This document shows, in pieces, positions 16,224-64,000 of a stretch of 64,000 bases of DNA. The DNA is taken from assembly GCA_026770705.1 (NCBI GenBank), contig JANJGN010000071.1, forward strand, positions 1,984,001 to 2,048,000, read 5' to 3'. The position numbers and the translations under genes were made by a program. Every line of letters starts with the position of its first letter. Position 1 is the first letter of the stretch. The notes below the pieces were generated by a model. The model was given only the letters and a program-made list of their open reading frames with translations. It searched no databases and was not told the origin of the DNA. The stretch is from Isurus oxyrinchus (Eukaryota).

Positions 16224-16344
16224 AGCTTTGTACAGCAACAATCTGGTCAGTCAGTGCGGACAAATAACGTGTGATGTTGGGTTAAGTGTAATGAAACTGG
16301 ACAGTGTCCTGGTTAGAATCACCTTCGTATCAGAGAGGCATTCC

Positions 16345-16945
16345 AGCACAGTGGGAGCCCATTCAGCCCATTGAGTCCATGCTGTCTCTCTGTAGAGCAA
16401 TCCACTCAGTCCCATTCCCCCACTCTATCCCCGTATCCCTGTGAGTTTATTTCCCCTCAAGTGTCCATCCAATTTCCTTTTGAAATCGTTCATCGTCTCC
16501 ACTTCCACCATCCTCGTAGGCAGCGAGTTCCAGCTCATTACTACTCGCTGTGTAAAAAAGTTCCTTCTCACATCCCCCCTCTGCCCAAAACCTTCAATCT
16601 GTGTCCCCCAGTCCTTGTACCATCAGCTAATGGCAACAGCTTCTCTTTGTCTACCTGATCTAAACCCATCATCATCTTGTACACCTCGATCAGATCCCCC
16701 CTCAATCTCCTTTGCTCCAAGGAGAACAACCCCAGCTTCTCCAACCCAACCTTGTAGCTAAAATCCCTCATCCCTGGACCCATTCTGCTCAATCTCCTCC
16801 CCACCCTCTCAAGGACCCTCACTTCCTTCCCAAAGTGAGGAGACCAGAACTGGACACAATACTCTAGTTGTGACCTAACCAGAGCTTTATAAATGTTCAG
16901 CATAACCTCCCTGTGTTTGTACTCAATCCCTCCATTTATGAAAAG
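16345..16945 (-). mobile_element. CR1 LINE 3' fragment (RT C-terminus)
   Basis: YKALVRSQLEYCVQFWSP...LEQRRLRGDLIEVYK; copy at 61670-62270. Confidence 0.9.
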
Positions 16946-17659
16946 CTTATTCTTTCCATCAGCACAAACAGCAATTTCCAAGTGGACTCCCATCAGCAGA
17001 CAGAGTGCAATGAAACATCGGCATGCCTGCTTCTTAATGTACGGAGAGAAACCTGCAACGAGAGATTCTCCTTCTTCTCCTCAGCAAGCTGAAACTTTTC
17101 CTTATACCTGGTGCTCCCCAGTCCTGCTGTGTGGACACATCATAACCACGGCATTGTCTGGCTGTGTGCAGCCAACATGGTCGAATAGGAATGAACAGAA
17201 ATGTGCCGTTGCTAAACTCTGTTCTCTGATTGGAATGTGCTTTCTGAATGCTGCACCTTTTTCATGCTGCGATAGATTGTAAGAAGCATTTGGGTTATGA
17301 ATAAAATTACATTGATTAACACAAGTGATTAAAATGCTCAGCCTGTTCTGTAGATATTTATAGATTAAAATTCTTATTTTGCTGCCAAATACTTGGCTCA
17401 AAGACATAGCTTCATGCTGTCACCTTTTCTCCATCATATGAGTTCCTCAGCCCATCTTTATAATAGGAATTTCCCATGTAAACATGTCACATTGTAGTTG
17501 CACACTGCTGCCAGTGGTGGTGCCATTCCAAAGCTGTCCTGCTGCACAGACACAGTGAGAATTATTCTCGACGTGTACATGATGTTGTTGTTACACAGAC
17601 ATCAGGCGGAATCTTGGTCAGCGCCTAGAATGCACTTGGGACAGTGCAGACCATGCTCA

Positions 17660-19020
17660 GAACTGACAGTGCAGCGTTTCCTCAGTGCTGACCCTCCGTC
17701 AGTGCAGCGCTCCCTCATTACTGTCTCTCTGACAGTGCTGCACTACCTCATTATTGACCCTTTTCAAGTGCTTCACCCCGTCATCATTGACCTTCTGACC
17801 GTGCAGGATTCCCTCATGGCTGACACTCTGACAGTGCAGCACTCCCTGAATACTGACCCTCTGATACTGTACCCCTCCATCACTAATGACTTTCCAACAG
17901 TTCAGCACTCCCTAGGTACAGACAATCTGACAGGGCAGCATTCCCTCAGTATTCAAACTCCCACTATGCAGCTGTCCCTCAGGATTCTCCCCCCCACAGT
18001 ACAGCACTCCCTCAGTACTCTCCCTCCCACAGTGCAGCACTCCCTCAGTTCTCTCACTCCCACAGTGCATTACTCCCTCAGTACTCACCCTCCCACAGTG
18101 CAGTACTCCCTCAGTACTCACCCTCCCACAGTGCAGCAGTCCCTCAGTACTCACCCTCCCACAGTGCAGCACACCCTCAGTACTCACCCTCCCAAAGTGC
18201 AGCAGTCCCTCAGTACTCACCCTCCCATAGTGCAGCACACCCTCAGTACTCACCCTCCCCCAGTGCAGCACTCCCTCAGTACTCACCCTCCCACAGTGCA
18301 GTACTCCCTCAGTACTCACCCTCCCCGAGTGCAACACTCCCTCAGTACTCACCCTCCCACAGTGCAGTACTCCCTCAGCACTCACCCTCCCACAGTGCAG
18401 TACTCCCTCAGTACTCACCCTCCCACAGTGCAGCACACCCTCAGTACACACCCTCCCACAGTGCAGCACTCCATCAGTACTGACCCTCCCACAGTGCAGC
18501 ACTCCCTCAGTACTCACCCTCCCACTGTGCTGTGTGAGTTGTTTCAATCAAGACTGGTGCACAAAGAGGGAGGTTTCAATGCTAAATCATTGAAATCGGT
18601 GAAAATTATTTTTAGGCTTACGAGAACAAGACTTTGTTCCTCAAATCCTTTCCTTTGCAATAACACACAGTACTAGAATCTCTGTTTAAATAAATTCCAG
18701 TTAAACTTTGCCATGAAAGGATATCTTCTCACACTCCGCTCTCCCTCAGTACTAACCCTCCCACAGTCCGGCACCCCCTCAATACTGACCCTCCGACTGT
18801 GCAAATCTCACTCAGTACAGACCCGCTGACAGTTCAGCACTCCCTCATTACTGATCCTCTGACAGTGCAGCACTCCCTCATTAAGGACCCTCTTCCAGTG
18901 CAGCACTCCCACGTTACTGTCCCTCTGACAGTGCAGCACTCCCACATTACTGACCTTCTGATAGTGCAGCACTCACTCAGTACTGACCCTCACACAGTGC
19001 AGCACTCCCTCAGTACTATA
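17660..19020 (+). repeat. 33-bp minisatellite arrays
   Basis: Arrays at 17660-18530 and 18740-19020. Confidence 0.92.
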
Positions 19021-19822
19021 CCCCTGTCAACATGTATCATACGGCCAGAGACCTGTATTGGGAACTCTATCACCTGCACTTCAGCCTCTGAGATGAGGGG
19101 GAGGGGTCTAATCCCACGGAGCCAATGGAGAAGCTTGATGACTACAGCTGCCCAAATATGAGCTGACAGATCACACATGGTAAACGTTTTGCTGAGAGCA
19201 CAAAACATCCTCGATCTTCTCACTGGTTACCCACTTCCTCATTTTGTCTCACAGTGACACATCCACCCTTTCTAATTAAATACACAGAGGGAGCAGCACA
19301 GGAAGAGGTCATTCAGCCCAAGCAGAGCGTGTGGGCAGTTCCTCCCCAGGCGAGCAGTCGGACAGGTCATGGGTAAGTAATGGAACGATTGGAATTCACT
19401 TCCACGACCAACACCGTCCTTTGTTGATGTTGTGACTTTATAAAGACAGATTCCAATGATTGATGCCTTTGAAAGATTTCTACTGATTATTGAGATCAGG
19501 GTGTGAGGCTCAAGTCTGTTGTACAGAACATCTTTCTAGCTCAAGGGATGAGGGAAGTGCAGAGACATGAGCTTTGGGACATCCTGAGGTGGTGAAAGGT
19601 GCTATGGAAATGCACGTCCTTCATTGTGTTACTTTCTTAAAGCCTTGTAACTCTCTGCAGAGCACCTATCATCCCACAGAGAATCAAATTAATCTGTGAA
19701 GACATTGTCTAAGAGCAGTTCTGATCTCTCGAGAGCTGTCGGACAAGAGGTGAGGTCTCATTAACTCCTTTCTCTTTCAGAACTTCAGAGTTAGAAGCTG
19801 AGGAAATATCTGGGAGTGGACA

Positions 19823-19862
19823 ATGATCGGGAAATCTTACTTCCTCCTGTCACTTCTCCAAG
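19823..19862 (+). CDS. Copy C: signal peptide exon (coding part)
   Basis: MIGKSYFLLSLLQ|gtaat, phase 1, continuing VGLS-QEWK in the V exon. Confidence 0.8.
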
Positions 19863-28869: not shown

Positions 28870-28966
28870 GTAGAGACTCCAGTAAATGGACAGTAGGATT
28901 GTTCACGGCTGGGATCATGTTGAGTGTTTTCCTGGCTGGAATCTTCATCTTCATCTGTGTGAGAAA
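28870..28966 (+). CDS. Copy C: transmembrane exon (uncharged)
   Basis: ttttacag|GT...AGAAA|gtaagt; RDSSKWTVGLFTAGIMLSVFLAGIFIFICVRK. Confidence 0.88.
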
Positions 28967-29843
28967 GTAAGTCTGAAGATTTAACTTGATTTTAATATAA
29001 ACATTTGCTTCAATGTTCTTTCCTTAAGTCGGTGATTGTTTCCCTTGGGATCAGCACCAGTTCCCTCTCTGTAAGTGATCCCTGTGTCCACTCTGATCCG
29101 GAGAGAACCTTTCATTGTCCTGTATCCAGGTAAACAATCACGAGACCCAGAGATTCCTCACTCTGCACGATTACTTCGGGATAAATATTTGCTTCAATGT
29201 TCTTTCCTGAAGTCGGTGATTGTTTCCCTTGTGTTAAGCGCCAGATGCCTCTCCGTAACTGGTCTCTTTGTCCCTTACGATCCAGAGAGAGTTTTTCATT
29301 GCCCGTTATCCAGATGAATAATAATCAGTTGCTGTGATCTGGAAGGCGCTGCCTGAAAGGGCGCTGGAAGCAGATTTAATAGGATCTTTCAAAAGGGGAA
29401 TTGAATAAATACTTGAAGGGGGAACATTTGAAGGGCTACGGGGGGAAGAGCAGGGGTGGAGATGGGGTCAAAGATATGGCGTGTCATTATAATGATATTA
29501 TACCTTAGGCTTATTTACTGTACAAGAAACAAAGCACCAATCGCTCACAGGGATTTGGTGAGAATGTTAATGATTTGTTTATCAAGACTCGGCACGAGAA
29601 CGGTTATACATACGGATAAAGATTGAAGGCATCAGAGCTGTGAGTGTGTGTTCTGCTCAAAGCAAATGTCAAACTAAGATTGGATCACATGACACACTTC
29701 CATTATAGTGATGTCACGCTGATATCCCTTATTGGAACTAGAGACAGTCCAGTCGTTGGTGTAAGGTTACACTGGTCTCTGTGTCTGTGCTGCACTGACT
29801 CTCTGCTGTATGATAACCACAGTGTGATATTGTGTTATTGCAG

Positions 29844-29925
29844 GAGAAAGACAGCGACGCAGGAGAGAGTTTCAGGGACCAGTGACATTGCATTGACCCC
29901 CAGGTCACTCTCTGTGAAGCACCAG
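29844..29925 (+). CDS. Copy C: first cytoplasmic exon
   Basis: ttgcag|G...CAG|gtacag, phase 2-0, RKTATQERVSGTSDIALTPRSLSVKHQ. Confidence 0.75.
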
Positions 29926-30129
29926 GTACAGGAGCTGTTTACACTCACTTCAAAGCTTCAACCTCAGTGTGTAGACAACACGTATACCAGATTCTCAGCC
30001 GGGTTACACATAGATATCTCCCTGTGAAGCAATGGCTCAGTGGTCAGCACTGTCTCTCGCTCCCAGCCTCTGGCACCCTCCATCACTCGCTCTTTGACCA
30101 GAAACCTGAACACAATAATGACAAGGCAC

Positions 30130-30460
30130 CTGATGTCAGTAGTGAGGGAGTGCTGCACTGCCAGAGGGTCAGTATTGAGGGAGTGCTGCGCTGTCAGAGG
30201 GTCAGTACTGAGGGAGTGCTGCCCTGTCAGAGGGTCAGTACTGAGGGAGTGCTGCACTGTCAGAGGGTCAGTACTGAGGGAGTGCTGCACTGTCAGAGGG
30301 TCAGTATTGAGGGAGTGCTGCACTGTCAGAGGGTCATTACTGAGGGAGTGTTGGACTGTCAGAGGGTCAGTACTGAGGGAGTGCTGCACTGTCAGATGGT
30401 CAGTATTGAGGGAGTGCTGCACTGTCAGAGGGTCAGTACTGAGGGAGTGCTGCACTGTTG
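30130..30460 (-). repeat. 33-bp minisatellite in reverse orientation
   Basis: Reverse complement of the 218-718 unit. Confidence 0.92.
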
Positions 30461-30645
30461 GAGTGTGATAGAGATTAAATTATAAAGAGAGAGAGAAAGA
30501 GAGACAGAGAAAGAGAGGGAAAAAAAGGGTTAAACCCACTGAGACACGACTGACACTAATGAGGCTGCACAATAATTTAACCCTATCAGTGGCAGTAAAT
30601 GATGTGAGGATGTCTTCTGTTTCCATTTCTCTGTCGGGTAAACAG

Positions 30646-30885
30646 AACGTGCTGATTACTGAGCCCCGGAACACAACCAGAGACACAACTAGCGAGGGGG
30701 AGACCCCAGCTCCCCGGGATCTCTCTGAAGGTCCAGTGGGAGGCGATGTTGGACATGGGAACCCCGACAATACCGACGAGCTTCTCTACGCCAACATCAA
30801 CTTTTCAAAGCTGCCCAGCGGTGACAGGACTGTGCACAGGAGCGAGGACACGGAATACGCACAGATCAGGTTCCAGAAAAACTGA
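30646..30885 (+). CDS. Copy C: terminal exon with ITIM (LLYANI) and ITSM/ITIM-like motif (TEYAQI)
   Basis: aaacag|AAC...TGA. ELLYANINF...DTEYAQIRF matches the two-motif tail typical of inhibitory Siglecs. Confidence 0.88.
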   Translation, partial: NVLITEPRNTTRDTTSEGETPAPRDLSEGPVGGDVGHGNPDNTDELLYANINFSKLPSGDRTVHRSEDTEYAQIRFQKN

Positions 30886-32094
30886 GTGTGAAACAGGGAG
30901 CGGGGCTGTGGGGTGTGTGCAGCCAACATGGCCAAACAGTAATGAACAGAAATATGATGTTGCTCAACTTTTTTTATTGGCTCTGAGTGAGCTTTCTGAA
31001 TGCTGCACCTTTTTCCATGCTGTAAAAGATTGCGAGAAGCTTATGGGTTGTGTATAATTTTACATCTGTTAATACAAGGTGAGGTGAGAGTGACTGCCCT
31101 TAACATTAAGGCTGCATTTGACCGAGTGTGGCCTCTAAGAGCCCGAGCATAACTGCAATCAATGGGAATCAGGGGTGGTACGAAAGTATAATAATTTGCA
31201 TACTATTCTCCTGGTTTGTTGTAAACTAGGTTTCTGGGTGTGAGTGTAGATGTGTGTCTGTCTGTGTGGCTTAATTACATCTGGAGTCAGGTAGACTTCA
31301 AGCTGGAGATTATCAAAAGAAGCTGGATGTAGAAATGTACTTGAAATGCTAATGAGAACACATGGAGGCTGTGTTAACATGTAAGGTGTGAAGGGGTTGT
31401 TTAGATTTCAAAGGGATGTCGGTCTGTTTAGGACAAGCCCAATAAGCAAAGCTAAGGAGTTTTTTTTTTTAATTTTACCCAAACTTCATTGACAATATTG
31501 GCAGCATGAAAGTTTATATTATGGGAAAGGTGTAGTTCCAAAGAATTTACACATCAAAGAGTGAGAAACATGTATAAAGGAGAATGAAAGGCTATGTTGG
31601 GGGCCATGTAAGATCTAACAGGAGTGTGTGAAACAGGCTTGAAGAAGCCTCCAGGCATTTGTGCATAAGTCTGTTATGTTCAGTAAATAAAGTTGGAGAA
31701 ACCCATTTAGAATTCCAGTGTCAAGTGTGTGCTGTGTTAACTCGCTGGGTTTGTTTTTAATCTAAAATCTTATTTTGGACTGTTGCCTTAAACGGGCTCT
31801 GTAACTGGGAGTCAGGTTAATTAGGAATTTGAGAATATATTTCAGCTGTAACTAATCGTGGTATTATGTATGTGCTTGAAATCTTTTATTTTGTTAATAA
31901 ATATCTTAATCGAATTTTTTAAATCTCTGAAGGTTGTGGTCAACTCATTACTCCTGAATTCAGTGCACGCTTCTTGTAATAAATGCAAATTGCAAAACTA
32001 TTGTGATAGCATGACCAATTTTCCCTTGTGGATTTGGAGCACCAAGCACACATCATCTGCCATGTCATGTCACAGGGAAAACTCTCCACTCGTT

Positions 32095-38365: not shown

Positions 38366-39139
38366 TGTGTGTGTGTGTGTGGCTGTCTCTCTGCCTGTCT
38401 GTGTGAGTATGAGTGTGTCTGCCTGCGCGAGCGTGTGTCAGTGTGAACAGATGTGAGTGTGTGTGTGTGTCTGAGTGAGNNNNNNNNNNNNNNNNNNNNN
38501 NNNNNNNNNNNNNNNNNNNNNNNNNNNNNNNNNNNNNNNNNNNNNNNNNNNNNNNNNNNNNNNNNNNNNNNNNNNNNNNNNNNNNNNNNNNNNNNNNNNN
38601 NNNNNNNNNNNNNNNNNNNNNNNNNNNNNNNNNNNNNNNNNNNNNNNTATTGTTGCATCTTAATTATTAACGTTATTTAAAAATAGTGATCACACAAGCC
38701 TGGTTTCTAAGGAAATGAAACTGACAACAATTTACAGTAAAGTGAAACGTACAGGAATAATCTATTTATTTTGAGCTGATGATATATAATTATACATGAG
38801 GCATGTTGTTAATTTCAAACATCATCTGAAATATGGCAGGTCTGACAGAGCAGCTTTCCCTCAGCGCTCACCCTCCGACAGTGCAGCACTCCCTCAGTAC
38901 TGACCCTCTGACAGTGCAGCACTCCCTCAGTACTGACCCTCCGACAGTTCAGCACTGTCTCAGTACTGACCCTTTGATCGAGCAGGGTCTCCCTCAGTAC
39001 TGACCTCCTGACAGTGCAGCACTCCCTCAGTACTCACCCTCCGACAGTGCAGCACTCCCTCAGCACTCCATCACTGGGGAGAGTTCATCTGGTTTTGAGC
39101 TGTAACCTTGAGATGGTTTGAAAACCCCAACCTTCTGTC

Positions 39140-39632: not shown

Positions 39633-42296
39633 TTCTGAATGAGCTGAGTTCACAGTTTCACACGTTGCTAGGGACCACTTTTCCGCCTCTCTGTCAGACT
39701 GTGTGTATCTGACAGCAGGTCAGGCAGAAATAGTCCAGAATGCACTGTGGTTTTGTAGCATTGAAACAACGACATGAACTAAATGAGTGCTGCACCAAAT
39801 AAAGACATGGAGTGACCACACCAAAAAACCACGTGACTTCCCCAGTTTCACATCTCCCTCAAACACAGAAAAACTGGGTTAACACTGACCCTCCTCCCAG
39901 AGCCAGTTCACCTCGTGTCCGATGCAGTCAGGAGAGGAAGATCATCTCTCCTCCGATCCTGCTAAACTGAACATTTCCAGAATTAGATCAGCTCCCTGAA
40001 GTGTCTCCAGTTAGACATTCATCTGACAGGATTGACTCTACAACCCTGGGGACTCATTCTCCTGTAAGTAAAACACTTGCTGCTCCTGTCAAATCTCTTC
40101 TGTACAGCATGGTCTCTGGATGTCCCAGAACACTTTACAATAGAGTTCACCCTTTTTTCGAAGTGTGGTTACTGTTGTAATGTAGGAAACGCAGCAGCCA
40201 ATTAGCGCACAGCAAGCTCCCACAAACAGCAATGTGATCACCTGTTTTTGGTGATGTTGGTTGAGGGATAAATATTGGTCCCAGGACACCGGGGAGATCT
40301 CCCCCCTGCTCTTCCTCCAAATAGTGGCTGTGGGATCTTTCACACCCGCCCGAGAGGGCAGACGGGGGTCTCGGTTTAGTGTCTAATATTGGACTAATCT
40401 CCAGGCGAGGTTGGCTGGATGGATTATTGACAAGGTCCATTCAGCCTGTAAAGAGTTTCTCTGTTTGAAATACCCAATCAAACATCGAGTTCTGTGTCTA
40501 AACCTTGTGTTGAAAAGACACCTTTCCAGCTCTTCACCTGCCATTAGCTTGTTGAGTCTTCACATGCTCCGTCTGTCCGTGACCAACCCCTCTCAGCTCA
40601 TCCTTTCCTTGTCGTACATCGAGCTGTTCATCCTGACGGGTTCCCTCCTTCCCAGTAACACTCCATCTCCGACATCAAACTAACTCCCAACACGTTGATG
40701 AATTGTATGGATTCCAGCGTCAGTTGGTTCTGTCTGAGGCTGTTTCTCTGATCGGGGACCGAGCTGTTCTGAACGGACATTGTGTTCAGCAGTTCTTATT
40801 GCAGATCAGTCCGTTCAACCAATGCTGCTGTTCACTGAGGTGACTCCGATTCGACATTCACACATTAATGATCTCATGTCCAGCATCAAACATCCGAATG
40901 AAGCAAGGTTCAAGCAAAAACCCAGCTGCTTGATCCGACAGTTATCTGTTCAGGCATGGCCCCTTGTTCCAAATAACAAACATTATTTAAAAATAGTCAT
41001 CACATGAGCCTGGTTAACAAGGAAATGAAACCATGAACAATTTGCAGTAAAGTGAAAGGTACAGGACTAATCTATTTATATTGAGCTGATGATATAGAAT
41101 TTCACACGAGGCATGTTGTTAATTTCAAACATCATCCAAGTATGGCAGTTCTGACAGTGCAGCACTCCCTCAGTACTGACCCTCTGACAGTGCAGCACTC
41201 CCTCAGTACTGACACTCTGACAGTGCAGCACTCCCTCAGTACTGACCCTCTGACAGTGCAGCACTTCCTCAGTACTGACCCTTTGACAGTGCAGCACTCC
41301 CTGAGTACTGACCCTTTGACAGTGCAGCACTCCCCCAGTACTGACCCACTGACAGTGCAGCACTCCCTTGGTACTGAATCCAGAGATACAAGGAAGAGAC
41401 TGAAGAGCTGACGATTCAGCTGAATTAAAAAACAGAGGCAGTTACAGAATCACAACAAGTTTACAGAGCAGAAGGAGGCCATTCAGCCCCTTGAGCCTGT
41501 TACACAGGAACAGGAGAGGCCATTCAGCCCCCCCGAACCTGTTACACAGGAATAGGAGGAGGCCATTCAGCCCCCTCGAGCCTGTTGCACAGGAACAGGA
41601 GGAGGCCCATTCAGCCCCTCGAGCCTCTTACACAGGAACAGGAAGAGGCAATTCAACCACATTCTTGACACCAGTTTGCTTACGGTGGAAGACAAAGAGT
41701 TGGTTTCTCAAATTCACACAAACCAACTCACATTTTGTCTCACAGTGACACATCAACCCTTTCTAATTAAACACACAGAGGGAGCAGCACAGGAAGATGT
41801 CATTCAGCCCAAGCAGAGCGGGTGGGCAGTCCCTCCCCAGGCGAGCAGTCGGACAGGTCCTGGGTAACTAACGGAACGATTGGAATTCACTTCCACGACC
41901 AACACCGTCCTTTGTTGATGTTCTGACTTTATAAAGAGAGATTCCAATGATTGATGCCTTTGAAAGATTTCTACTGATTATTGAGATCTGGGTGTGAGGC
42001 TCAAGTCTATTGTACAGAACATCTTTCTAGCTCAAGGGATGAGGAAAATGGGATGCCCTGAGCTGGTGAAAGGTGCTATAGAAATGCAAGCCCTTCATTG
42101 TTTTTCATTCTTAAAGCCTTTTAACTCTCTGCAGAACACCTATCATCCCACAGGGAATCAAATTAGTCTTTGAAGACATTGTCTAAAAGGAGTTCTGATA
42201 TCTCAAGAGCTGTCGGACAAGAGGTGAGGTCTCATTAACTCCTTTCTCTTTCACAGCTTGAGAGTGAGAAGTGGATGGAATATCTGGGAGTGGACA

Positions 42297-42336
42297 ATGA
42301 TCAGGAAATCTTACTTCCTCCTGTCACTTCTCCAAG
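42297..42336 (+). CDS. Copy D: signal peptide exon (coding part)
   Basis: MIRKSYFLLSLLQ|gtaat. Confidence 0.75.
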
Positions 42337-45778: not shown

Positions 45779-45984
45779 GTAAGTATGGACATCCTTCATT
45801 ATACATTCGCTGGAACAGTCTAGATTATGCACAGCAGGATCCCATAGAAAGGTATTCTGATGAGAACCAGATCATCTGTAGTTTACGGAAAAACACTGAC
45901 CAGAAAACAGTTAATGACAGTTTCTGAACATTAACACTGGAGCTTTTTTTTTCCAGCCAAGAAGCTGATAGAACAGAGCATCAC

Positions 45985-48305
45985 TCACAATATACTAACC
46001 TCCTGACAGTGCAGCACTCCCTCAGTACTGACCGCCTGACAGTGCAGCACTCCCTCAGTACTGACCGCCTGACAGTGCAGCACTCCCTCAGTACTGATCC
46101 TCCAATAGTGCAGCAATCACTCAGTACTGACCCTCCAACAGTGCAGAACTCCCTCAGCTCTGACCCTCTGACAGTGTAGCACTCCCTCAGTACTGACCCT
46201 CTGACAGTGCAGCACTCCCTCAGTACTGACCTGCTGAAATTGCAGCTCTCCCTCAGTACTGACCCTCTGACATTGCAGCACTCCCTCAGTACTGACCCTC
46301 TGACAGTGCAGCACTGCCTCAGTACTGACCCTCCAATAATGAAATAATCCCTCAGTACTGACTCTCCGACAGTGCAGCACTCCTTCACTGCTGACCCTCC
46401 AACTCTGCAGTGCTCCCTCAGGACTGAAAATCCAACATTTCATATCTCCCTCCTGACTGACCCTCTGAAAAAAAAGCAGATCCTCGGTCGAGACCTTCAA
46501 ACAGTGCAGTACTTCCACAGTTCTGAATCTCCCCCCCACCCACAGTGCAGCACTTCCACAGTACTGAACCTCTGACAGTGCAGCACTCCCTCAGTACTGA
46601 TCCTCCCACCTGCAGCACTCCCTCAGTACTGACCCTCCCACATGCAGCACTCCCTCAGTACTGACCCTCCCACAGTGCAGCACTCCCTCAGTACTGACCC
46701 TCCCACATGCAGCATTCCCTCAGTACTGACCCTCGCACATGCAGCACTCCCTCAGTACTGACCCTTTGACAGTGCTGCACTACCTCACTATTGGTTTTAA
46801 ACTAAATAGAGTGTGGGGCAAATGTTTCTGGAGAGGGTATATGTACAGTTACAAACCAAAAGGATTTATTAGCATTGCAGGATAGCTGTTTTGGCAACGA
46901 TACCCAGTGTGTGACAGGAAGGGACACAGTGTCCAAACATAAAAATACATCAGCAAATAGTGTCAGAGGGGGGGAAATGATAAAAAGACAAAATTAATGG
47001 CTCTTTACTTAAATGCACATAGTATTTGGAATGTTGGCCTTTATTTCAAAGGGAATGGAGTATAAAAATAGGGAAGTCTTGCTAAAACTATACAAGGCAC
47101 TAGTTAGACCACACCTAGAATACTGTGAGCAGTTTTGGTTCCCTTATCTAAGGAAAGATGTACTGGCATTGGAGGCAGTCCAGAGAAGGTTCACTAGGTT
47201 GATCCCAGTAATGGAGGGATTTTCATATGAGGAGAGGTTGAGTAGGATGGGCCTGTACTCATTGGAGTTTAGGAGAATGAGAGCTGACCTTATTGAAACA
47301 TATAAGATTCTTAGGGTGCTTGACAGGGTAGATGCTGAGAGGTTGTTTCCCCTTGTGGGAGAGTCTAGGACCAGAGGGCATAATCTCAGAGTAAGGGGTC
47401 ACCCATTTAAGACAGAGATGAGGAGTTTCTTCCCTCAGAGGGTAGTGAATGTGTGGAATTCTTTACCGCAGAGAGTTGCAGAGGCTGGGTCATTAATTAT
47501 ATTCAAGGCTGAGATACACAGTTGTTTAATCAGTCAGGGAATCAAAGGCTATGGGGAAGAGGCAGGAAAGTGGAGTTGAGGATTGTCAGATCAGCCATGG
47601 TGTCATTGAATGGCGGAGCAGAGTTGATTGGCCGAATGGCCTCCTTCTGCTCTGACGTCTTGTGGTCTTATGGTCTTATCACCCTCCAACAGTGCAGAGC
47701 TCCCTAATTACTGACCCTCCGACAGTGCAGCACTCTTCCAGTACTGACCCTCCGACAGTGCAGCATTCCCTCAGTACTGACCCTCCAACAGTGCAGAGAT
47801 CCCTAATTACTGACGCTCCGACAATGCAGCACTCTTCCAGTACTGACCCTCCGACAGTGCAGCATTCCCTCAGTACTGACCCTCCAACAGTGCAGCACTG
47901 CCTCAATACTGACCCTCCAACAGTGCAGCACTCCCTCAGTGCTGACCCTCCGACAATGAAGTACTCGCTCAGTACTGACTATGCGGCAGTGAAGCTTTCA
48001 CAGTACCCACCCACCATCAGTATAGCAGGTCCTCAGTACTCACCCTCCAACAGTGCAGCACTCCCTCAGTACTGATCCTCCAACAGTGCAGCACTCCATC
48101 AGTACTGATTCTCCGACAGTGAAGTACTCACTCAGTACTGACTATGCGGCAGTGAAGCTTTCACAGTACCCACCCACCATCAGTACAGCAGGTCCTCAGT
48201 ACTCACCCTCCAACAGGGCAGCACTCCCTCAGTACTCACCCTCCAACAGTGCAGCACTCCCTCAGTACTGACCCTCCAACAGTGCAGCACTCCCTCAGTA
48301 CTGAA
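45985..48305 (+). repeat. 33-bp minisatellite split by a CR1 insertion
   Basis: Arrays at 45985-46790 and 47680-48305. Confidence 0.9.
46795..47678 (+). mobile_element. CR1 LINE fragment with RT C-terminus and short tandem-repeat tail
   Basis: LYKALVRPHLEYCEQFW...RRMRADLIETYK...VVNVWNSLP; ends in (tcttatgg)-type repeats. Confidence 0.9.
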
Positions 48306-51520: not shown

Positions 51521-51651
51521 GTGAGTCACACACCACAGGATCCCCAGCCTCTCAGCTGCTCCAGTAGCCTGGTTATTGATATGGCTGCTCCAGTCCTGTA
51601 TCTGCAATGTTTTATACAGTCACTCCCAAACCCAACCAAACTCACACCCAA

Positions 51652-53205
51652 CACCGTTCAGAATCAATAATCAAACCCCGTTCAGAATCAATAATCAAAC
51701 CCCGTTCAGAATCAATAATCACACCCCGTTCAGAATCAATAATCAAACCCTGTTCAGTATCAATAACCAAACTCCGTTCAGTAACAATAATAAAACCCGT
51801 TCAGAATCAATAATCAAACCCCGATCAGTATCAATAATCAAACCCCGTTCAGAATTAATAATCAAACCCCTTTCAGAATCAATAATCAATCCCCGTTCAG
51901 TATCAATAAACAAACCCCGTTCAGAATCAATAATCAAACCGCGTACAGAATCAATAATCAAACCCCGTTCAGTATACATAATCAAACCCCGTTTAGTATC
52001 AATAATCAAACCCCTTTCAGAATCAATAATCAATCCCCATTCAGTATCAATAAACAAACCCCGTTTAGAATCAATAATCAAACCCCGCTCAGTATCAATA
52101 ATCAAACCGCGTTCAGAATCAATAATCAAACCCCGTTCAGTATACATAATCAAACCCCGTTCAGTATCAATAATCAAACCCCGTTCAGTATCAATAATCA
52201 AACTCCGTTCAGGATCAATAATCAAACACCGTTCAGAATCAATAATCAAACCCCGTTCAATATCAATAATCAAACCCCGTTCAATATCAATAATCTAACT
52301 TCGTTCAGGATCAATAATCAAACCCCATTCAGATTCAATAATCAAAACCCTTTCAGAATCAATAATCAAACCCCATTCAGTATCAATAATCAAACCCCGT
52401 TCAGTATCAATAATCAAACCCCGTTCAGAATTAAAAATCAAACCCTGTTCAGTATCAATAATCTAATCCCGTTCAGAATCAATAATCAAACCCCGTTCAG
52501 AATTAAAAATCAAACCCCGTTCAGTATCAATAATCAAACCCCGTTCAGTATCAATAATCAAACCCCGTTCAGAATCAATAATCAAACCCTGTTCAGTATC
52601 AATAATCAAACTACGTTCAGGATCAATAATCAAACTCCGTTCAGATTCAATAATCAAAACCCATTCAGAATCAATATTCAAACCCCATTCAGCATCAATA
52701 ATCAAACCCCGTTCAGTATAAATATTCAAACCCCATTCAGAATCTATAATCAAACCCCGTTCAGAATTAATAATCAAACCTCGTTCAGAATCAATAATCA
52801 AACCACGTTCAGTATCAATTATCAAACCCCGTTCAGAATCAATAATCAAACCCCGTTCAGAATCAATAATCAAACCCCGTTCAGTATCAATAATCAAACC
52901 CTCTTCAGAATCAATTATCAAACCCCGTTCAGTATCAATAATCAAACCCCATTCACAATCAATAATCAAACCCCGTTCAGAATCAATAATCAAACCCCAT
53001 TCAGAATCAATAATCAAACCCCGTTCAGTATCAATAATCAAACCCTCTTCAGTATCAATAATCAAACCCCGTTCAGAATCAATAATCAAACCCCGTTCAG
53101 AATCAATTATCAAACCCTGTTCAGTATCAATAATCAAACCCCGTTCAGAATCAATTATCAAACCCTGTTCAGTATCAATAATCAAACCCTGTTCAGTATC
53201 AATAA
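51652..53205 (+). repeat. 24-bp minisatellite, about 65 units
   Basis: Paralog of 4912-6850. Confidence 0.96.
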
Positions 53206-54479: not shown

Positions 54480-56290
54480 GAACAGGAGGAGGCCATTCAG
54501 CCCCCTCGAGCCTGCTACACAGGAACAAGAGGGCACCTGAAATAAAAACAGAAAATGCTGGAGAAACTGAGTAGGTCTGGCAGCATCTGTGCAGAGATAA
54601 ACAGAAATAACATTTCGAGTCCGTATGACCCTTCTTCAGAGTCTCAAAGCAAAAACTCTGTTTCTCTCTCCACAGCTGCTGCCAGACCTGCTGAGTTAAT
54701 GCAGCATTTTCTGTTTTTAGTTCAGATTTACAGCATCTGCAGTATTTATTTTTAATGAGAGGAGGACATTCAGCCCCTCGAGCCTGTTACACAGGAACAG
54801 GAGAAGGCCCATTCTGTCCCCTTGAGCCAGTTACACAGGAACAGGAGGAGGCCCATTCTATCCCTTTGAACCTGTTACACAGGAACAGGAGGAGGCCATT
54901 CAGCCCCCTCGAGCCTGTTACACAGGAACAGGGGGAGGCCCATTCAGCCCCTCGAGCCTGTTACGCAGGAACAGGAGGAGGCCCATTCAGCCCCCTCGAG
55001 CATGTTACACAGGAACAGGAGGAGGCCCACTCAGTCCCCTCAAGCTTGTTACACAGGAACAGGAGGAGGCCCATTCTGCCCCTCGAGCCTATAACACAGG
55101 AAAAGGAGGAGGCCCATTCAGCCCCATGAGCCTGGTACACAAGGAGACAAGGAGGCCATTCAGCCCCCCTGAGCCTGTTGCACAGGAAAACGAGGAGGCC
55201 CATTCAGCCTCTCAAGCTTATTACCCAGGAACAGGAGGAGGTCCATTCAGCCCCTCGAGCCTGTTACACAGGAACAGGAGGAGGCCCACTCTGCCCCATG
55301 AGCCTGGTACACAGAGAGAAGGAGGCCATTCAGCCCCCCTGAGCCTGTTGCACAGGAAAAGGAGATCCATTCAGCCCCTCGAGCTTGTTACACAGGAACA
55401 GGAGGAGGTTCATTCAGCCCCCTCGAGCCTGTTACACAGCAACAGGAGGAGGCCCATTCAGCCCCCTCAAGCCTGTTGCACAGGAACAGGAGGAGGCCCA
55501 TTCAGCCCCCTCGAGCCTGTTACACAGGAACAGGAGGAGGCCCACTCAGCCCCATGAGCCTGGTACACAGAGAGAAGGAGGCCATTCAGCCCCCCTGAGC
55601 CTGTTGCACAGGAAAAGGAGACCCATTCAGCCCCTCGAGCTTGTTACACAGGAACAGGAGGAGGTCCATTCAGCCCCTCGAGCCTGTTACACAGGAACAG
55701 GAGGAAGTCATTCAGCCCCCTTGAACCTATAACACAGGAACAGGAGGAGGCCATTCAGCCCTCTCGAGCTTGTTACACAGGAACAGGGGGAGGCCCATTC
55801 AGCCTCCTCAGACATGTTACATAGGAACAGGAGGAGGCCCATTCAGCCTCCTCAGACATGTTACATAGGAACAGTAAGAGGACATTCAATTCCTCAACCC
55901 TCTTTACTGGAGCAGTAAACACATTCAGCCTCCTTGTGCCTGTTACACAAGAACAGGAGGAGGTCCATTCAGCCCCTCAAGTCAGTGACATAGGAACAGG
56001 AGAAGTCTCATTCAGCCACACGAGCATCTTATATAAGAACATGAGGGGGCCCAAACAGCCCCTCAAGCCTCTTACACAAGAAGAGGAGGAGGAGGTTCAT
56101 TCAGTCCATCGAGGCTGTTACACAGGGACAGGAGGAGGCCCATTCAGCCACATGAGCCTGTTACACAGGGACTGGAGGAGGCCCATTCAGCTCCCTCGAA
56201 CATGTTACTCTTGAACACGAGGAGGTGCATACAGTCCCTCAAGCCTGTTACACTGGAACAGGAGGAGGCCCAGTCAACCCCTCGAGCCTC
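54480..56290 (+). repeat. 43-44-bp minisatellite
   Basis: Paralog of 8120-10985 without the 8790-9625 insertion. Confidence 0.9.
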
Positions 56291-56948
56291 TTGCATGTGA
56301 ACAGTCGATGGCCCTTCAACCACATTCTTGGTACGCAAAGGGTTAACAGTTTTCTAACTGTGCGAGGCAAAGAGCTGCTTTCTAACTTGGTACCAAGCAC
56401 TTCCTCATTTTGTCTCACAGTGACACATCAACCCTTTCTCATTAAACACACAGAGGGAGCAGCACAGGAAGAGGTCATTCAGCCCAAGCAGAGCGTGTGG
56501 GCAGTTCCTCCCCAGGCGAGCAGTCGGACAGGTCCTGGGTAAGTAACGGAACGATTGGAATTCACTTCCACCACCAACACCGTCCTTTGTTGATGTTGTG
56601 ACTTTATAAAGACAGATTCCAATGATTGATGCCTTTGAAAGATTTCTACTGATTATTGAGATCTGGGTGTGAGGCTCAGGTCTGTTGTACAGAACATCTT
56701 TCTAGCTCAAGGGATGAGGGAAGAGCAGGGACATGAGATTTGGGACGTCCTGAGATAGTGAAAGGTGCTACAGAAATGCAAGTCCTTCATTGTTTTTCTT
56801 TCTTAAAGCCTTGTAACTCTCTGCAGAACACCTATCATCCCACAGAGAATCAAATTAGTCTGTGAAGACATTGTCTAAAAGCAGTTCTGATCTCTCGAGA
56901 GCTGTCGGACAAGAGGTGAGGTCTCATTAACTCCTTTCTCTTTCACAG

Positions 56949-57027
56949 CTTGAGAGTGAGAAGTGGATGGAATATCTGGGAGTGGACGATGATCGGGAAA
57001 TCTACTTCCTCTTGTCACTTCTCCAAG
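56949..57027 (+). CDS. Copy E: leader exon; upstream ATG 56967 in frame, canonical ATG 56989 out of frame
   Basis: tctac versus tcttac in paralogs; MEYLGVDDDREIYFLLSLLQ|gtaat, phase 1. Confidence 0.6.
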
Positions 57028-57730
57028 GTAATATCATCGTCAGCTCGGATAGATTTATGTTTAACAGTCTTTGTAAAAGATCATTCATATCTCTTTATCT
57101 CTGTAACCTCCTGCAACTCACCCAAACAACTTCCCAGATCTCTGTGTTACTCCAATTCCGGCCTCTTGACCATCCCCCGATTCCCATCACTCCAATACTG
57201 GCGGCCGGGCCTTCAGCTGCCTGGGGCCTGAGCTCTGGAATTCACTCCCTAAACCTCGGGGATGGAGGAGCTCAGAGGGTTTCATTTTACTGAGAATCAC
57301 CACGACCACATCACAGCTGCAGTGAGAATAGACAGAGGGTCCAGCCCTCACACTTCCTGCACAGTTTCACCATAGCAACCACAATATGGAAATTTAAAAA
57401 TACTGAAAGTTAAACTGAAGCTCAAACCAGTCAGTTTAGAGAGATGAGATGTTTACACAGTTTCCCTGTGTGTCTTGTAGACACTGTGTTGGGTGGAAGA
57501 CTGGCTTCACTAAACAGGGTCCTGAGGACCATGAGCCAATGTAGAATGAACTTGTCCACTCCTGTGTCCAGGATTCTCTTCCCTCCGTTGTGAAACCTTG
57601 GGGAGTTCCTTGTGCGTCCTGTAGATGGTCCACACTGCAGCCACTGTGCCCCAGTGATGGAGGGGGTGGATATCGAGTCTAGTGGATCTACAAACTATCC
57701 AGAGTTAAATATTGATATTTCTCTCCCCAG

Positions 57731-58105
57731 TTGGACTGTCACAAGAGTGGAAAGGTGACACTCCCCGAGAGGTTGCAGCACAGGAAGGCTCGTGTGTACA
57801 GATTCCATGTCATTACAGTTACTCATCAAATTTAGTAGGGAGATCGCGTGTCAGAATCTGGTTGAAAGGAATAGATGTGAATCCACAGCCTAAATGGTCT
57901 ATAGCCTTTCACTCCGAAGGTCACAGTCACAGGGATCAAAGATTCCACCATCGGACCCGGCTGTCAGGAGCCCTGAAAGATGGCGACTGTTCCCTGATTA
58001 TAAACAACATCAGACAGGAAGATGCAGGACCTTATTTTTTCAGAATAGAATTTGACAATGGTCCGAGCCATAACTATTACCCTGTAACCCAGCTTCACGT
58101 TTCTG
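57731..58105 (+). CDS. Copy E: Siglec V-set exon
   Basis: Intact, 375 nt, contains YFFRIE, near-identical to the V exon of copy B. Confidence 0.9.
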
Positions 58106-58964
58106 GTAAGTGCTGTGTTATAATTACTCAACAATTCACATTCAACACTCAATGGGAAATAACACAAACTGTGACATTTACATATTAACACAAAACACAG
58201 CTTATTATAACACGCTACCTGATTCTCAATAACCTGGTGATAGCTTCCAGTTCAGTCCTAAAGCAACCTCTAATACTCACTTTAATATCAATGATTAAAA
58301 GCATTAACTGTATTATCAGGTTATCCACTCCCATCAATCTCTCCTGTCCTGTTTAAAAGTCTGACGTATCGATAAAAGAAAGATGTGCATTTCTGCAGCG
58401 CAATTTACCACCTCAGGAGGATCCAAATCCCTTCACAGCCAATGAAATTATTCCTAAATTGTAGTCACAGATGTAAAACACAGCAGGCAGTTTGTGCACA
58501 GCAAGATCCAACAAACCACAAGGTGCTAAATCACCTAGATCACTGAGGAAATGAAAAGCCAGTGAACAGAAACCTCTGGTCTGATGAAGAGTCATACGGA
58601 CTCGAAACGTTAACCCTGTCTTCCTCTCCACTGATACTGTCAGACCTGCTGAGTCTTTCCAGCAATTTTTGTTTTTGTTTCAGATTTCCAGCATCCACAG
58701 TATTCTGCTTTTAACTCCAATCTCTGGTCTGAGCCTCTTCTCTCATCCAGTGTTCTCAATTCACATGTCTCGGAGTGAACGTGTATTAAGCTGAGAGACA
58801 GAAACACTACTGCCAAAGAGCAAGAAAATCTTTCCTGATCATTGTAACCTCTCAGTTCTGATATCATCCTTGTAAAAGTGCTTTCTCTTGTGGGACTGTG
58901 ATTTCTATTTGAACTGATGCTTCACGTTATATTTTTCTAAAAGGATCCATTCTCCGTCTGTTAG

Positions 58965-59261
58965 ATTTCACAGATAAACCCACGATATTCCCTGCTGAAA
59001 TTATTGCAGGAAAGCGTGTGGATGTAAGCTGCACCTTCAACACAACGTGCAATGGAACAGCAGCACCTGTCTTAACCTGGGACACTCCCACTGACGTACC
59101 TGGATCAGTCTCAAACACTGTAACTCAGCATGGTGTCACTCTGACCTATACTTCTGTTCTGACCCTGACCCCATCACTCAAACACCACGGACACACTCTC
59201 AGCTGCAGAGTGAGATATCCATCTGTTTCATCGGAGCGGACCCTTGTACTAACTGTGCAAG
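58965..59261 (+). CDS. Copy E: C2-set exon
   Basis: Intact, 297 nt, phase 1-1. Confidence 0.9.
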
Positions 59262-59584
59262 GTTAGTATGGACACCCTTCATTCTACATCAGCACTCCCT
59301 CAGCGCTGACCCTCTGACAGTGCAGCCCATTCTCAGTATCCACATTCTAAGGCCTCTCAAAGTGCTTCACAGTCGATAGAAGTTAATTGATCTTTATTTG
59401 ATTATTGCTGAATGAAGAGACAAGCTGTCTAAAGTTTACATCTCGCACACACCATTCTCCATGGCAACACCTCCACCTATCAGAGACCACTTGCCAACCA
59501 ATCAGCACTCTCCTCCCGTTAAGTATAAATTGTTGTTCACTTTCTGTTGGTAATCCTGCGAACGTGCTTCTTGATTCCTGCCAT

Positions 59585-59737
59585 GACATCTTAATGTCCA
59601 AATGAACAGAACAAGTTCCAACAATGAGCTGTGGTTGGTGATTCCTCACGTTACATCCAGGGACACTGGAGACTATCAGTGTGTGGCAGAAAATGAACAT
59701 GGAGCAGTGGGGGTTTTCATAACCGTCACTGTGGAAC
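59585..59737 (+). pseudogene. Copy E: 3' half of Ig3 exon
   Basis: Same lesion as 14278-14430. Confidence 0.8.
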
Positions 59738-61408
59738 GTGAGTGTACACAGACTTCAACATCTCTCTCAGATTCAAACATTACACAAACACCCTCAAATA
59801 TACAGAACTAAATAGACACGTGCAGACACACATGTATGAGCAATTACAAAGACACACTCACGAACAAACACACTAGCACACACTCCCCTGTGGTTTACCT
59901 GAGTACTGCACTGGAGAGTTGGCCAGGATTCTGGGATTTGTGTTCCCATTCATATTTATGGAAGAATATGGAAATTGCAAAGTCTATTACAGACACTCAG
60001 ATGCATAGAGGCACTCACAGATACTCTCTGCCTCTCCAACTCTCTCTCTCCCTTTAAGAAGCTTCCTGAAAGCTAACCCTTCGAACAATCACCGGTCCCA
60101 ACTCCTCCTTATCTGATTCTGTGTGATTTTGTTTGTGTATCTGAGAGTAAGAGAGAGGTGGAGAGGTTTAGTTAGAGAATTCCTGCTGGTGAAAAGCTTA
60201 CATCATTTACTCACCTTTCCAGTGCACATATTTCCCAGTATGTCCAATGCCCCTGTTTATAATGATGACTGCCTATGTAAACGTCACGCTGTAGTTACAT
60301 TCTCCCACCAGTGGTGGCATTGTAGCACTTAATTCTTGTTTTTCCCAGCTTTTCAAGCAACTCCACTTCCCAGTTTGCTACACAAGCTGTGAGTTCATCA
60401 GAATTAAATTATTTCTCAAATGATAGATTTGATAATTCATTTTATTGAAAACTTCCTCAGCGCCTCCTTGAAGGGTTCACACTCTCTGGGAAGCAGGAAT
60501 AGGCTGGATGTTGGGGAGGTCATCTTTTCCCAGAGAGTAGGGATCCTTGAGAATGTGCTGTCAGTGGGTGTGGTAGTTCCTGTTTCTCTGTCGCCTTCAA
60601 GAGGGATCTGGAGTGGTTACTGACTGGGGGAGAGATCATGGAAGTGGAGAATGATACAGCACAGGAGGAGGCCATTCAGCCCATTGTGCCTGTGCCAGGT
60701 CTTTCAATTTTCTATCCAATCAGATCCACTAACCACCACTCCACTTTGCCACCATCATCCTCCTTCAAGTGTTTATCCAATTTCCCTTTTGAAAGTTCCT
60801 ATTGCATCTGCTTCCAGCGCCCTTTCAGGCAGAACCTTCCAGATCACAACAACTCGCTCTGTCAAAACAAATTCTCCTCATCTCCACCTCCGGTTCGTCA
60901 ATCTTGTCCCTCTGGTTACCGACCCTCCTGCCTCTTAAATACATCGATACTGTTCACCTCAACCACTCCCAGTGATAGCGAGTTCCACATTCTCCCCTCT
61001 CTCTGGGTAAAGATTGGAACTGTTTATTAAGCGGGGGGTGTAAGTCCGTGGGGGAGTCCATCTCGATCCTGCCCGATTCACACACACGTCCGAGATGGAT
61101 TTCCACGCTGCACTAAACGTTTCCAGAATTTTCTACAGCACAATCCTGTACACAGCGATGGAGAGAAACATTGGACAGGGAGTCCAACAGCACAATGATC
61201 CATTCTCACCAATGTTCCACGCTAAGGGGAAAGTTCCGATTGTCCACTCTTAGAGTGTTTACAATGAAAACATTCATTCCACATTGAATCCCAGTGGATG
61301 GGTCAATATTACAGCAAATGTTGCAGTGATATGAAGCTTGATTGTTCAGCCAGAGTGAGAGATTGAAAGCGGAGAGTCAGTGATGATTTCTTTCTGTGTG
61401 TTCTCTAG

Positions 61409-61548
61409 ACAGTGGAGGAGAGATTCTGCACGTGATCCTGATCCTGGGAATACGAGCTGTGATATTCCTTGTGGCTGTGGTTATCACTATCGCTGGAGTC
61501 TGTGTCTGGGAGAGACAAACAGTGAAAGGAAGTCGACAGACTGTTTGA
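61409..61548 (+). CDS. Copy E: activating-type TM + short tail exon (Arg in TM)
   Basis: SGGEILHVILILGIRAVIFLVAVVITIAGVCVWERQTVKGSRQTV*; Arg codon at 61453-61455. Confidence 0.78.
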
Positions 61549-62984
61549 AGCTTTGTACAGCAACAATCTGGTCAGTCAGTGCGGACAAATAACGTGTGAT
61601 GTTGGGTTAAGTGTAATGAAACTGGTCAGTGTCCTGGTTAGAATCACCTTCGTATCAGAGAGGCATTCCAGCACAGTGGGAGCCCATTCAGCCCATTGAG
61701 TCCATGCTGTCTCTCTGTAGAGCAATCCACTCAGTCCCATTCCCCCACTCTATCCCCGTATCCCTGTGAGTTTATTTCCCCTCAAGTGTCCATCCAATTT
61801 CCTTTTGAAATCGTTCATCGTCTCCACTTCCACCATCCTCGTAGGCAGCGAGTTCCAGCTCATTACCACTCGCTGTGTAAAAAAGTTCCTTCTCACATCC
61901 CCCCTCTGCCCAAAACCTTCAATCTGTGTCCCCCAGTCCTTGTCCCATCAGCTAATGGCAACAGCTTGTCTTTGTCTACATTATCTAAACCCGTCATCAT
62001 CTTGTACACCTCGATCAGATCCCCCCTCAATCTCCTTTGCTCCAAGGAGAACAACCCCAGCTTCTCCAACCCAACCTTGTAGCTAAAATCCCTCATCCCT
62101 GGACCCATTCTGCTCAATCTCCTCCCCACCCTCTCAAGGACACTCACTTCCTTCCCAAAGTGAGGAGACCAGAACTGGACACAATACTCTAGTTGTGACC
62201 TAACCAGAGCTTTATAAATGTTCAGCATAACCTCCCTGTGTTTGTACTCAATCCCTCGATTTATGAAAAACTTATTCTTTCCATCAGCACAAACAGCAAT
62301 TTCCAAGCGGACTCCCATCAGCAGACAGAGTGCAATGAAACATCGGCATGCCTGCTTCTTAATGTACGGAGAGAAACCTGGAACGAGAGATTCTCCTTCT
62401 TCTCCTCAGCAAGCTGAAACTTTTCCTTATACCTGGTGCTCCCCAGTCCTGCTGTGTGGACACATCATAACCACGGCATTGTCTGTCTGTGTGCAGCCAA
62501 CATGGTCGAATAGGAATGAACAGAAATGTGACGTTGCTAAACTCTGTTCTCTGATTGGAATGTGCTTTCTGAATGCTGCACCTTTTTCATGCTGCGGTAG
62601 ATTGTAAGAAGCATTTGTGTTATGAATAAAATTACATTGATTAACACAAGTGATTAAAATGCTCAGGCTGTTCTGTAGATATTTATTGATTAAAATTCTT
62701 ATTTTGCTGCCAAATTCTTGCCTCAAAGAAAAGCTTCTTGTTGTCTCATTTTCTCTATTATATAAATTCCTGTGCCCATCCTTATAATAGAAATTTCCAA
62801 TGTAAACATGTCACATTGTAGTTTCACACTCCTGCCAGTGGTGGTGCCATTCCAAAGCTGTCTTGCTGCACAGACGCAGTGAGAAATATTCTCGACGTGT
62901 ACATGATGTTGTTGTTACACAGACATCAGGCGGAACCTTGGGCATTGCCTAGAATGCACTTGGGACAGTGCAGACCACGCTCAG

Positions 62985-63950
62985 AACTGACAGTGCAGCG
63001 TTTCCTCAGTGCTGACCCTCCGTCAGTGCAGCGCTCCCTCATTACTGTCTCTCTGACAGTGCTGCACTACCTCATTATTGACCCTTTTCAAGTGCTTCAC
63101 CCCGTCATCATTGACCTTCTGACCGTGCAGGATTCCCTTATGGCTGACACTCTGACAGTGCAGCACTCCCTGAATACTGACCCTCTGATACTGTACCCCT
63201 CCATCACTAATGACTTTCCAACAGTTCAGCACTCCCTAGGTACAGACAATCTGACAGGGCAGCATTCCCTCAGTATTCAAACTCCCACTATGCAGCTGTC
63301 CCTCAGGATTCTCCCCCCCACAGTGCAGCACTCCCTCAGTACTCTCCCTCCCACAGTGCAGTACTCCCTCAGTACTCACCCTCCCACAGTGCAGCACTCC
63401 CTCAGTACTCACCCTCCCACAGTGCAGCACTCCCTCAGTTCTCTCACTCCCACAGTGCATTACTCCCTCAGTACTCACCCTCCCAAAGTGCAGCAGTCCC
63501 TCAGTACTCACCCTCCCACAGTGCAGCAGTCCCTCAGTGCTCTCCCTCCCACAGTGCAGCACTCCCTCAGTACTCACCCTCCCACAGTGCAGCACTCCCT
63601 CAGTACTCACCCTCCCACAGTGCAGAACTCCATCAGTACTCACCCTCCCACAGTGCAGCACTCCCTCAGTACTCACCCTCCCAAAGTGCAGCACTCCCTC
63701 AGTACTCACCCTCCCACAGTGCAGCACACCCTCAGTACTCACCCTCCCCCAGTGCAGTACTCCCTCAGTACTCACCCTCCCCGAGTGCAACACTCCCTCA
63801 GTACTCACCCTCCCACAGTGCAGTACTCCCTCAGTACTCACCCTCCCACAGTGCAGTACTCCCTCAGTACTCACCCTCCCACAGTGCAGCACACCCTCAG
63901 TACTCACCCTCCCACAGTGCAGCACTCCCTCAGTACTCACCCTCCCACTG
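62985..63950 (+). repeat. 33-bp minisatellite
   Basis: Paralog of 17660-18530 with more units. Confidence 0.92.
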
Positions 63951-64000
63951 TGCTGTGTGAGTTGTTTCAATCAAGACTGGTGCACAAAGAGGGAGGTTTC

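Follow-up and report, generated by a model that had tools for sequence, protein, structure and literature searches.

A spliced membrane exon with a conserved arginine closes a Siglec-type receptor gene in the shark Isurus oxyrinchus: a probable adaptor-coupled partner of an inhibitory-type neighbour

The window analysed here, a stretch of 64,000 nucleotides from the shark Isurus oxyrinchus (contig JANJGN010000071.1, positions 1,984,001 to 2,048,000), carries a cluster of Siglec copies, referred to below as A to E. Gene E lies towards the downstream end, on the forward strand, and its last coding exon is a transmembrane exon at 61409–61570 (+ strand, 162 nt, phase 1). This is a real, spliced exon of a Siglec-type receptor gene. 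Its acceptor has a pyrimidine-rich tract and an AG at 61407–61408, with 61409 as the first exon base, and the single G left over at 59261, the end of the C2-set exon, joins the first two letters, AC, to make the junction codon GAC (Asp). Codons read from 61411 give a 45-residue peptide that begins SGGEILHV, contains the motif ILGIRA and ends at a TGA stop (61546–61548). The hydrophobic run of this peptide extends from I5 to W33, 29 residues in all. Residue 15, an arginine (codon CGA, 61453–61455, + strand), lies inside the run and 18 residues above its cytoplasmic end. What follows the helix is a cytoplasmic tail of 12 residues, ERQTVKGSRQTV, which has no tyrosine and contains no ITIM, ITSM or ITAM. 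Beyond the stop, the exon holds 22 nt of 3′ untranslated region (UTR) up to the donor 61570/GT (CTG/GTCAGT). A first-pass annotation had read the exon in phase 1 as a helix with an arginine, a short tail and a stop, and this agrees with the sequence exactly; its picture of a basic residue within the helix above a short, motif-less tail stands as well. A GPI anchor was considered and ruled out, because a charged tail follows the helix.

At 46 codons, the frame is short, and it is missing from the list of open reading frames at the default threshold. The first-pass annotation had remarked that the exon is not in that list, which is true at the default cut-off of 60 amino acids; once the minimum is lowered to 50, a 50-residue frame (61396–61548) does appear. 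A short, unlisted frame is what one would see if this were a chance opening in intronic or intergenic DNA. We regard that reading as refuted and leave it practically no weight, as exact GT..AG joints lead both into and out of the exon in contigs from four runs. The exon is more than chance because it also contains the most hydrophobic 19-mer outside microsatellites on the forward strand of the window (Kyte–Doolittle mean 2.95), has homologues with E-values from 7e-14 to 1e-8, and is spliced in the contigs at precisely 61409. A Pfam search of the exon returned nothing meaningful, and no chain among the solved structures matched it even at E = 10.

The contigs were assembled from four public runs, belonging to four studies and filed under two organism labels, and were compared with positions 56600–62300. 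The RNA status of the runs in their records is a guess; it is the exact GT..AG joints that lead us to conclude that they contain spliced RNA. Both the joint from the V-set to the C2-set exon (58105 to 58965) and the joint from the C2-set to the transmembrane exon (59261 to 61409, GT..AG) are found in contigs of all four runs, and the joint from the leader to the V-set exon (57027 to 57731) in one contig of one run (X6). A 240-nt contig of run X5 passes from the C2-set exon through the whole transmembrane exon and then into 19 letters that match 62288 exactly. Every contig over the C2-set exon has T at 59169, where gene E has C, and the contigs over the transmembrane exon differ from gene E at three letters, carry an inserted T after 61551 and retain 18 letters that are missing from copy B. 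As these variants are absent from the gene E copy, the contigs derive from a paralogue or from another allele. The direct, in-frame splice from C2 to the membrane exon with its aspartate codon (G + AC), which had been proposed from the letters alone, with reads joining 59261 to 61409 named as its check, is thus proven for the gene family rather than for the gene E copy itself.

The upstream exons of gene E are recognisable, and one of them is altered. The leader exon (56967–57027, + strand), counted from an in-frame ATG, ends in phase 1 with its donor GT at 57028–57029. Relative to copies B, C and D it has lost one T, and because of this 1-nt deletion the canonical start, ATG 56989 (giving MIGKSYFLLSLLQ in C and D and in catshark proteins), is out of frame in E; the canonical leader is present in the shark proteins P0014 and P0016. 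The ATG at 56967 lies upstream, is brought into frame in E by the same deletion, has a favourable context, with G at −3 and +4, and preserves the hydrophobic core of the signal peptide, although the substitute signal peptide would have an unusually acidic N-terminal extension. The leader exon with its two ATGs is shared across the cluster (56967–57027, 11661–11721, 42275–42335 and 19804–19861). The upstream ATG is out of frame in B and D, where it would act as an overlapping upstream open reading frame, is absent in C, and is in frame only in E. The NCBI models of two CD22-like shark proteins, P0004 and P0005, also begin at it.

The V-set exon (57731–58105, + strand, phase 1-1) is of the Siglec type, with Pfam scores of 1.7e-13 for V-set and 2.6e-9 for Ig_CD22, and the best solved relatives of the domain are sialoadhesin, Siglec-5 and Siglec-10. 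Its YFFRIEF segment aligns with YNFRFEI of sialoadhesin and YFFRVE of Siglec-5, so that the arginine of the FR(x)E pattern is matched, and the domain is predicted to carry the sialic-acid-binding arginine of the Siglec family (F-R-x-E). The C2-set exon (58965–59261, + strand, phase 1-1; Pfam C2-set_2, 1.5e-8) has its donor GT at 59262–59263. Of the third immunoglobulin exon, only the 3′ half is left (59585–59737, + strand), as seen in alignment with the intact exons of A and D. The acceptor and the 5′ half, including the first cysteine, have given way to some 180 nt of unrelated sequence, with a sharp onset of blastn homology at 59585 and a TGA in frame at 59584–59586; the first-pass annotation was right that this exon is broken. 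The remnant is skipped in the transcripts, and loose contig ends at 59585 stem from paralogues with an intact exon. With the third immunoglobulin exon dead, C2 is spliced directly to the transmembrane exon. All introns of gene E are GT..AG and of phase 1, and the frame of 873 nt, checked exon by exon, is open. The database searches likewise took each exon separately. The best explanation of the locus is that gene E would encode a type I protein of 290 residues, with a V and a C2 domain, a single arginine-bearing helix and a motif-less tail of 12 residues.

Downstream of the coding region, the 3′ UTR is interrupted by an intron of 717 nt (61571–62287, + strand, GT..AG), across which the X5 contig, leaving at 61570, continues at 62288. 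The intron contains a C-terminal fragment of a LINE reverse transcriptase (open reading frame 61893–62318, minus strand), which is also present in copy B. The last exon (62288–62650, + strand) is non-coding and has an AATAAA at 62625–62630; the 3′ end of the gene, near 62650, is approximate, being placed by the position of the AATAAA rather than by an observed transcript end. The usual rule for nonsense-mediated decay is a distance of 50–55 nt. The stop codon in the transmembrane exon is 22 nt upstream of the last exon junction, and decay of the gene E mRNA is therefore not expected. The last exon has an open frame of 105 codons in the phase reached either by skipping the transmembrane exon or by reading through its stop (62290–62607; in copy B, 16965–17279), and a frame as open was seen in just 47 of 20,000 shuffles. 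We considered whether this might be a lost cytoplasmic tail and rejected the idea on the following observations: each of the five differences from copy B alters an amino acid, the 3′ part of the exon (62488–62650, the only part with such a relative) is homologous to the 3′ UTR of gene C (30914–31078) with the matching pieces in different frames, and in the eight homologues with a terminal cassette the frame stops no more than 12 residues past the helix. We read the open frame as chance, which does not explain it fully.

Comparison with the neighbouring copies indicates how gene E is put together. The leader and promoter of E are 93% identical to those of C, and the V-set exon with its intron is 92.5% identical to C in nucleotides and 72% in protein. 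The C2-set exon is 97% identical to that of D, and the last 160 nt of the 3′ UTR are 78% identical to C. Nothing in A, C or D corresponds to the stretch from 59790 to 62487, which includes the transmembrane exon. With ends like those of C and D around an unmatched middle, gene E is a mosaic, in which the arginine cassette lies between a Siglec head and a common 3′ end. The claim that the exon is unrelated to the membrane exons of A, C and D is borne out for C and probably holds for A and D: within the window, its only counterpart is the twin in copy B, and the transmembrane exon of gene C, near 28905, is uncharged. The last coding exon of gene C carries LLYANI (30781) and TEYAQI (30850), within the region 28905–30873. 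By these motifs, its tail is the ITIM/ITSM pair typical of CD33-related Siglecs, and gene C would supply the cluster with an inhibitory receptor whose ectodomain is related to that of E. A 33-bp satellite (203–720, 17666–19017, 30135–30468, 38845–39068, 41154–41375, 45973–46790, 47679–48302 and 62960–64000) flanks or separates nearly every Siglec copy and could be a substrate for the duplications. It also gives rise to long false open reading frames (GRVSTEGVLHC repeats, minus strand). Two further blocks of tandem repeats upstream of E, at 51576–53185 and 54755–56540, contain long repetitive open reading frames on both strands.

Gene E has a segmental duplicate in copy B (11295–18533). Identity between the two is 97.7% over 7.26 kb and 99.7% around the transmembrane exon, introns included, so that their agreement is uninformative about selection. 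The V-set exons differ at nine positions. The twin transmembrane exon (16102–16223, + strand) is identical to that of E save for an in-frame deletion of 18 nt, equivalent to 61474–61491, which removes six residues of the helix, and the canonical leader of B has a TAA stop (at about 11700–11715). On this reading of its exons, B is probably a young pseudogene. The condition of this twin bears on gene E itself, since the exon type could be functional in the family and the E copy nonetheless be recently duplicated and decaying or untranslated, a pseudogene in the making. The leader deletion that displaces the canonical start of E and the death of its third immunoglobulin exon would suit such a history, as would the damaged leader and helix of B, and no contig carries letters private to gene E, such as the C at 59169. 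The missing letters are, however, weak evidence because contigs drop rare variants, and the upstream ATG restores the frame in a good context with the core of the signal peptide kept. Furthermore, the V-set, C2-set and transmembrane exons are all open, and their cysteines, the lectin arginine and the canonical splice sites are intact. We therefore consider decay of the E copy a real but minority prospect, and treat gene E as a copy that is presumably translated.

The membrane exon is not peculiar to this locus. When the exon peptide was compared by HMMER with 1.84 billion representative proteins, ten matched, and nine of these were examined; the tenth, P0008, is a weak match in several stretches and is outside the nine counted. 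All nine are shark proteins annotated by NCBI (E = 7e-14 to 1e-8), from Scyliorhinus torazame, Chiloscyllium punctatum, C. plagiosum, Hemiscyllium ocellatum, Rhincodon typus and Mustelus asterias. A further six came from a word search with the cassette, among them proteins of 270–348 residues from Carcharodon carcharias and Scyliorhinus canicula, and the carriers now number 15 predicted proteins in nine species of galeomorph shark from three orders. In the same HMMER search, rays, chimaeras, squalomorph sharks and other vertebrates yielded no match at E ≤ 0.001. The frame and the membrane arginine are kept in all 15, as had been anticipated for related species if the exon were genuine, and the segments ILGIRA (the arginine and its neighbours), IF and CV are invariant in the alignment. 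Eight of the nine examined HMMER hits have the cassette at the C-terminus, followed by tails of 4–12 residues. In the ninth, P0010 (XP_043539248.1, Chiloscyllium plagiosum), the cassette is internal, and after it comes a C2-set exon that seems to belong to the next gene; two genes appear to have been merged in this model.

The ectodomains to which the cassette is joined are diverse, comprising Siglec V-C2-Ig chains, CD22-like immunoglobulin repeats, a single V domain and SLAM-like structures. In these predicted proteins, the same exon type is joined to several kinds of immunoglobulin receptor in galeomorph sharks. The two-domain product with a basic residue in its helix, suggested for gene E from the window alone, has counterparts among the predicted proteins of the great white shark and of catsharks. 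Three of these, P0014, P0015 and P0016 (270–273 residues, from great white shark and small-spotted catshark), match the V-C2-TM layout exactly. The junction is Asp-SGGE in P0014 and P0015, as in gene E, with Tyr in place of the Asp in P0016; P0012 (348 residues) contains part of a further V domain as well. In their C2-set and transmembrane exons, the proteins from the great white shark scarcely differ from the window. Relative to a Chiloscyllium Siglec, identity is 83% in the transmembrane exon, 52% in V and 73% in C2. The membrane anchor is thus better kept than the ligand-binding head, and this pattern of conservation argues for a partner within the membrane. Such proteins have already been predicted by automatic annotation in at least nine shark species, and gene E is a good but ordinary new member of the family. 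Our literature search on shark Siglecs, shark DAP12/TYROBP and paired receptors of cartilaginous fish found no paper on these proteins.

In modular immune receptors, a single basic residue in the membrane docks on an acidic pair in a dimeric adaptor (PMC13107469). We suggest that gene E is likely to encode a receptor of this kind, a Siglec-type molecule that uses its arginine cassette to couple to an adaptor and signals in an activating sense. By analogy with mammalian receptors, the arginine would most likely have two functions, retaining the receptor chain as long as it is unassembled and engaging the two aspartates of a dimeric signalling adaptor; the resulting signalling would be activating, opposite to that of the ITIM/ITSM tail of gene C. 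As to which adaptor might be used, the known systems differ in the residue and in its depth. Partners of DAP12 have a central lysine and NKG2D, which pairs with DAP10, has a central arginine, whereas the arginine by which CD89 engages FcR-gamma is placed close to the helix top (PMC13107469). In the gene E cassette, residue 7, eight above the arginine, is polar and variable (H/D/S). Taken with the 18 residues that separate the arginine from the inner end, this places the arginine in the outer third of the helix. An arginine near the helix top is best fitted, by analogy, to an assembly of the FcR-gamma/zeta type, and less well to DAP12. Against this proposal stands a survey of 2014 that found no FcR-gamma in sharks (PMC4016189).

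The same geometry can be turned against adaptor coupling. With a hydrophobic run as long as 29 residues, an arginine 18 residues from the inner end may sit near the outer head-group region and could snorkel to the surface without a partner, and the polar, variable position 7 suggests that the interface is near. The protein would then need no adaptor and would act, without a tail, as a decoy or adhesion molecule in competition with the inhibitory Siglecs for ligand. It is hard to see, however, why a plain anchor should be more conserved than the ectodomain, and the arginine and its five neighbours do not vary among the three shark orders and four receptor types compared; moreover, the same design in mammals is coupled to adaptors (PMC13107469). 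We judge the adaptor-free molecule improbable, and adaptor coupling remains our preferred reading of gene E.

A further and distinctly tentative proposal, to which we give less credence than to its denial, is that the cassette serves galeomorph sharks as a universal activating plug, a single exon shuffled between Siglec, CD22-like, SLAM-like and V-only receptors, with an adaptor interface that is specific in sequence. In that case, the invariance of a segment as long as ILGIRA-x-IF and beyond would imply that recognition depends on sequence, unlike in mammalian DAP12 receptors, where only the charge matters. The partner might be a dedicated and possibly shark-specific one, or three helices might meet at the interface, with the receptor helix contributing more than one of its faces.

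For the transmembrane exon itself, the gain is modest: the gene model of one copy is corrected, and the 3′ UTR intron, the dead third immunoglobulin exon and the state of the twin are added to it. The cassette is nevertheless a compact module with which to ask which adaptor cartilaginous fish use. Paired activating and inhibitory Siglecs have been described in mammals. In the shark cluster, an ITIM/ITSM Siglec stands beside Siglecs that end in a conserved arginine cassette, and the paired design is therefore either far older than mammals or has arisen twice. Bony fish are reported to be without CD33-related Siglecs (PMC7226832).

The closest known proteins are the shark models. XP_072325011.1 (CD33-like, Scyliorhinus torazame), P0014, P0015 and P0016 have the V-C2-TM(Arg) organisation, the ILGIRA core and the short tail in common with E, and the transmembrane exon is 77–90% identical among them. 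The models are automatic, and gene E is set apart from them by a distinct CC′ loop region in V and by its altered leader. The orectolobiform cassettes have their stop four codons earlier, at KGS.

Siglec-15 invites comparison because it, too, combines a two-domain V-C2 ectodomain with a basic residue in the membrane, and the first-pass annotation had both equated the two architectures and likened the membrane segments. The first point holds as far as the layout of V, C2 and a basic helix goes, but the link is one of architecture only. The second is not supported as homology: where the gene E cassette has an arginine, fish and mammals alike keep a lysine in Siglec-15 (PMC7226832), and a match of four residues would in any case not be significant. 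Nor is the head especially close: Siglec-15 (7zoz) matches the V domain of gene E at E = 2e-6, behind sialoadhesin, Siglec-5, Siglec-10, MAG, Siglec-8 and Siglec-7. We accordingly rejected gene E as an orthologue of Siglec-15, as it has Arg in place of Lys and a V domain closer to six other Siglecs. The two-domain layout of E also arose by loss of the third immunoglobulin exon, unlike that of Siglec-15.

Among receptors with a membrane arginine, those of the KIR/CD89 type have it 3–4 residues into the hydrophobic run, and in gene E it is about 8–11 residues in. In macaque activating KIR, a report describes an arginine-bearing transmembrane region that was grafted by recombination (PMC8102735). 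These KIR and the Fc-alpha receptor Fc-alpha-RI (CD89) are arginine-type partners of FcR-gamma and have no sequence relationship to E.

The human activating partners of Siglec-5 and Siglec-11 are Siglec-14 and Siglec-16. These two, like other paired receptors, follow the same design as gene E, in which a basic membrane residue and a short tail are combined with a lectin head that resembles the head of a neighbouring inhibitory receptor. Their origin is nonetheless independent. The transmembrane exon of E is a cassette that it shares with CD22-like, SLAM-like and V-only receptors, and the head of E is not near-identical to that of C, protein identity being only about 72%.
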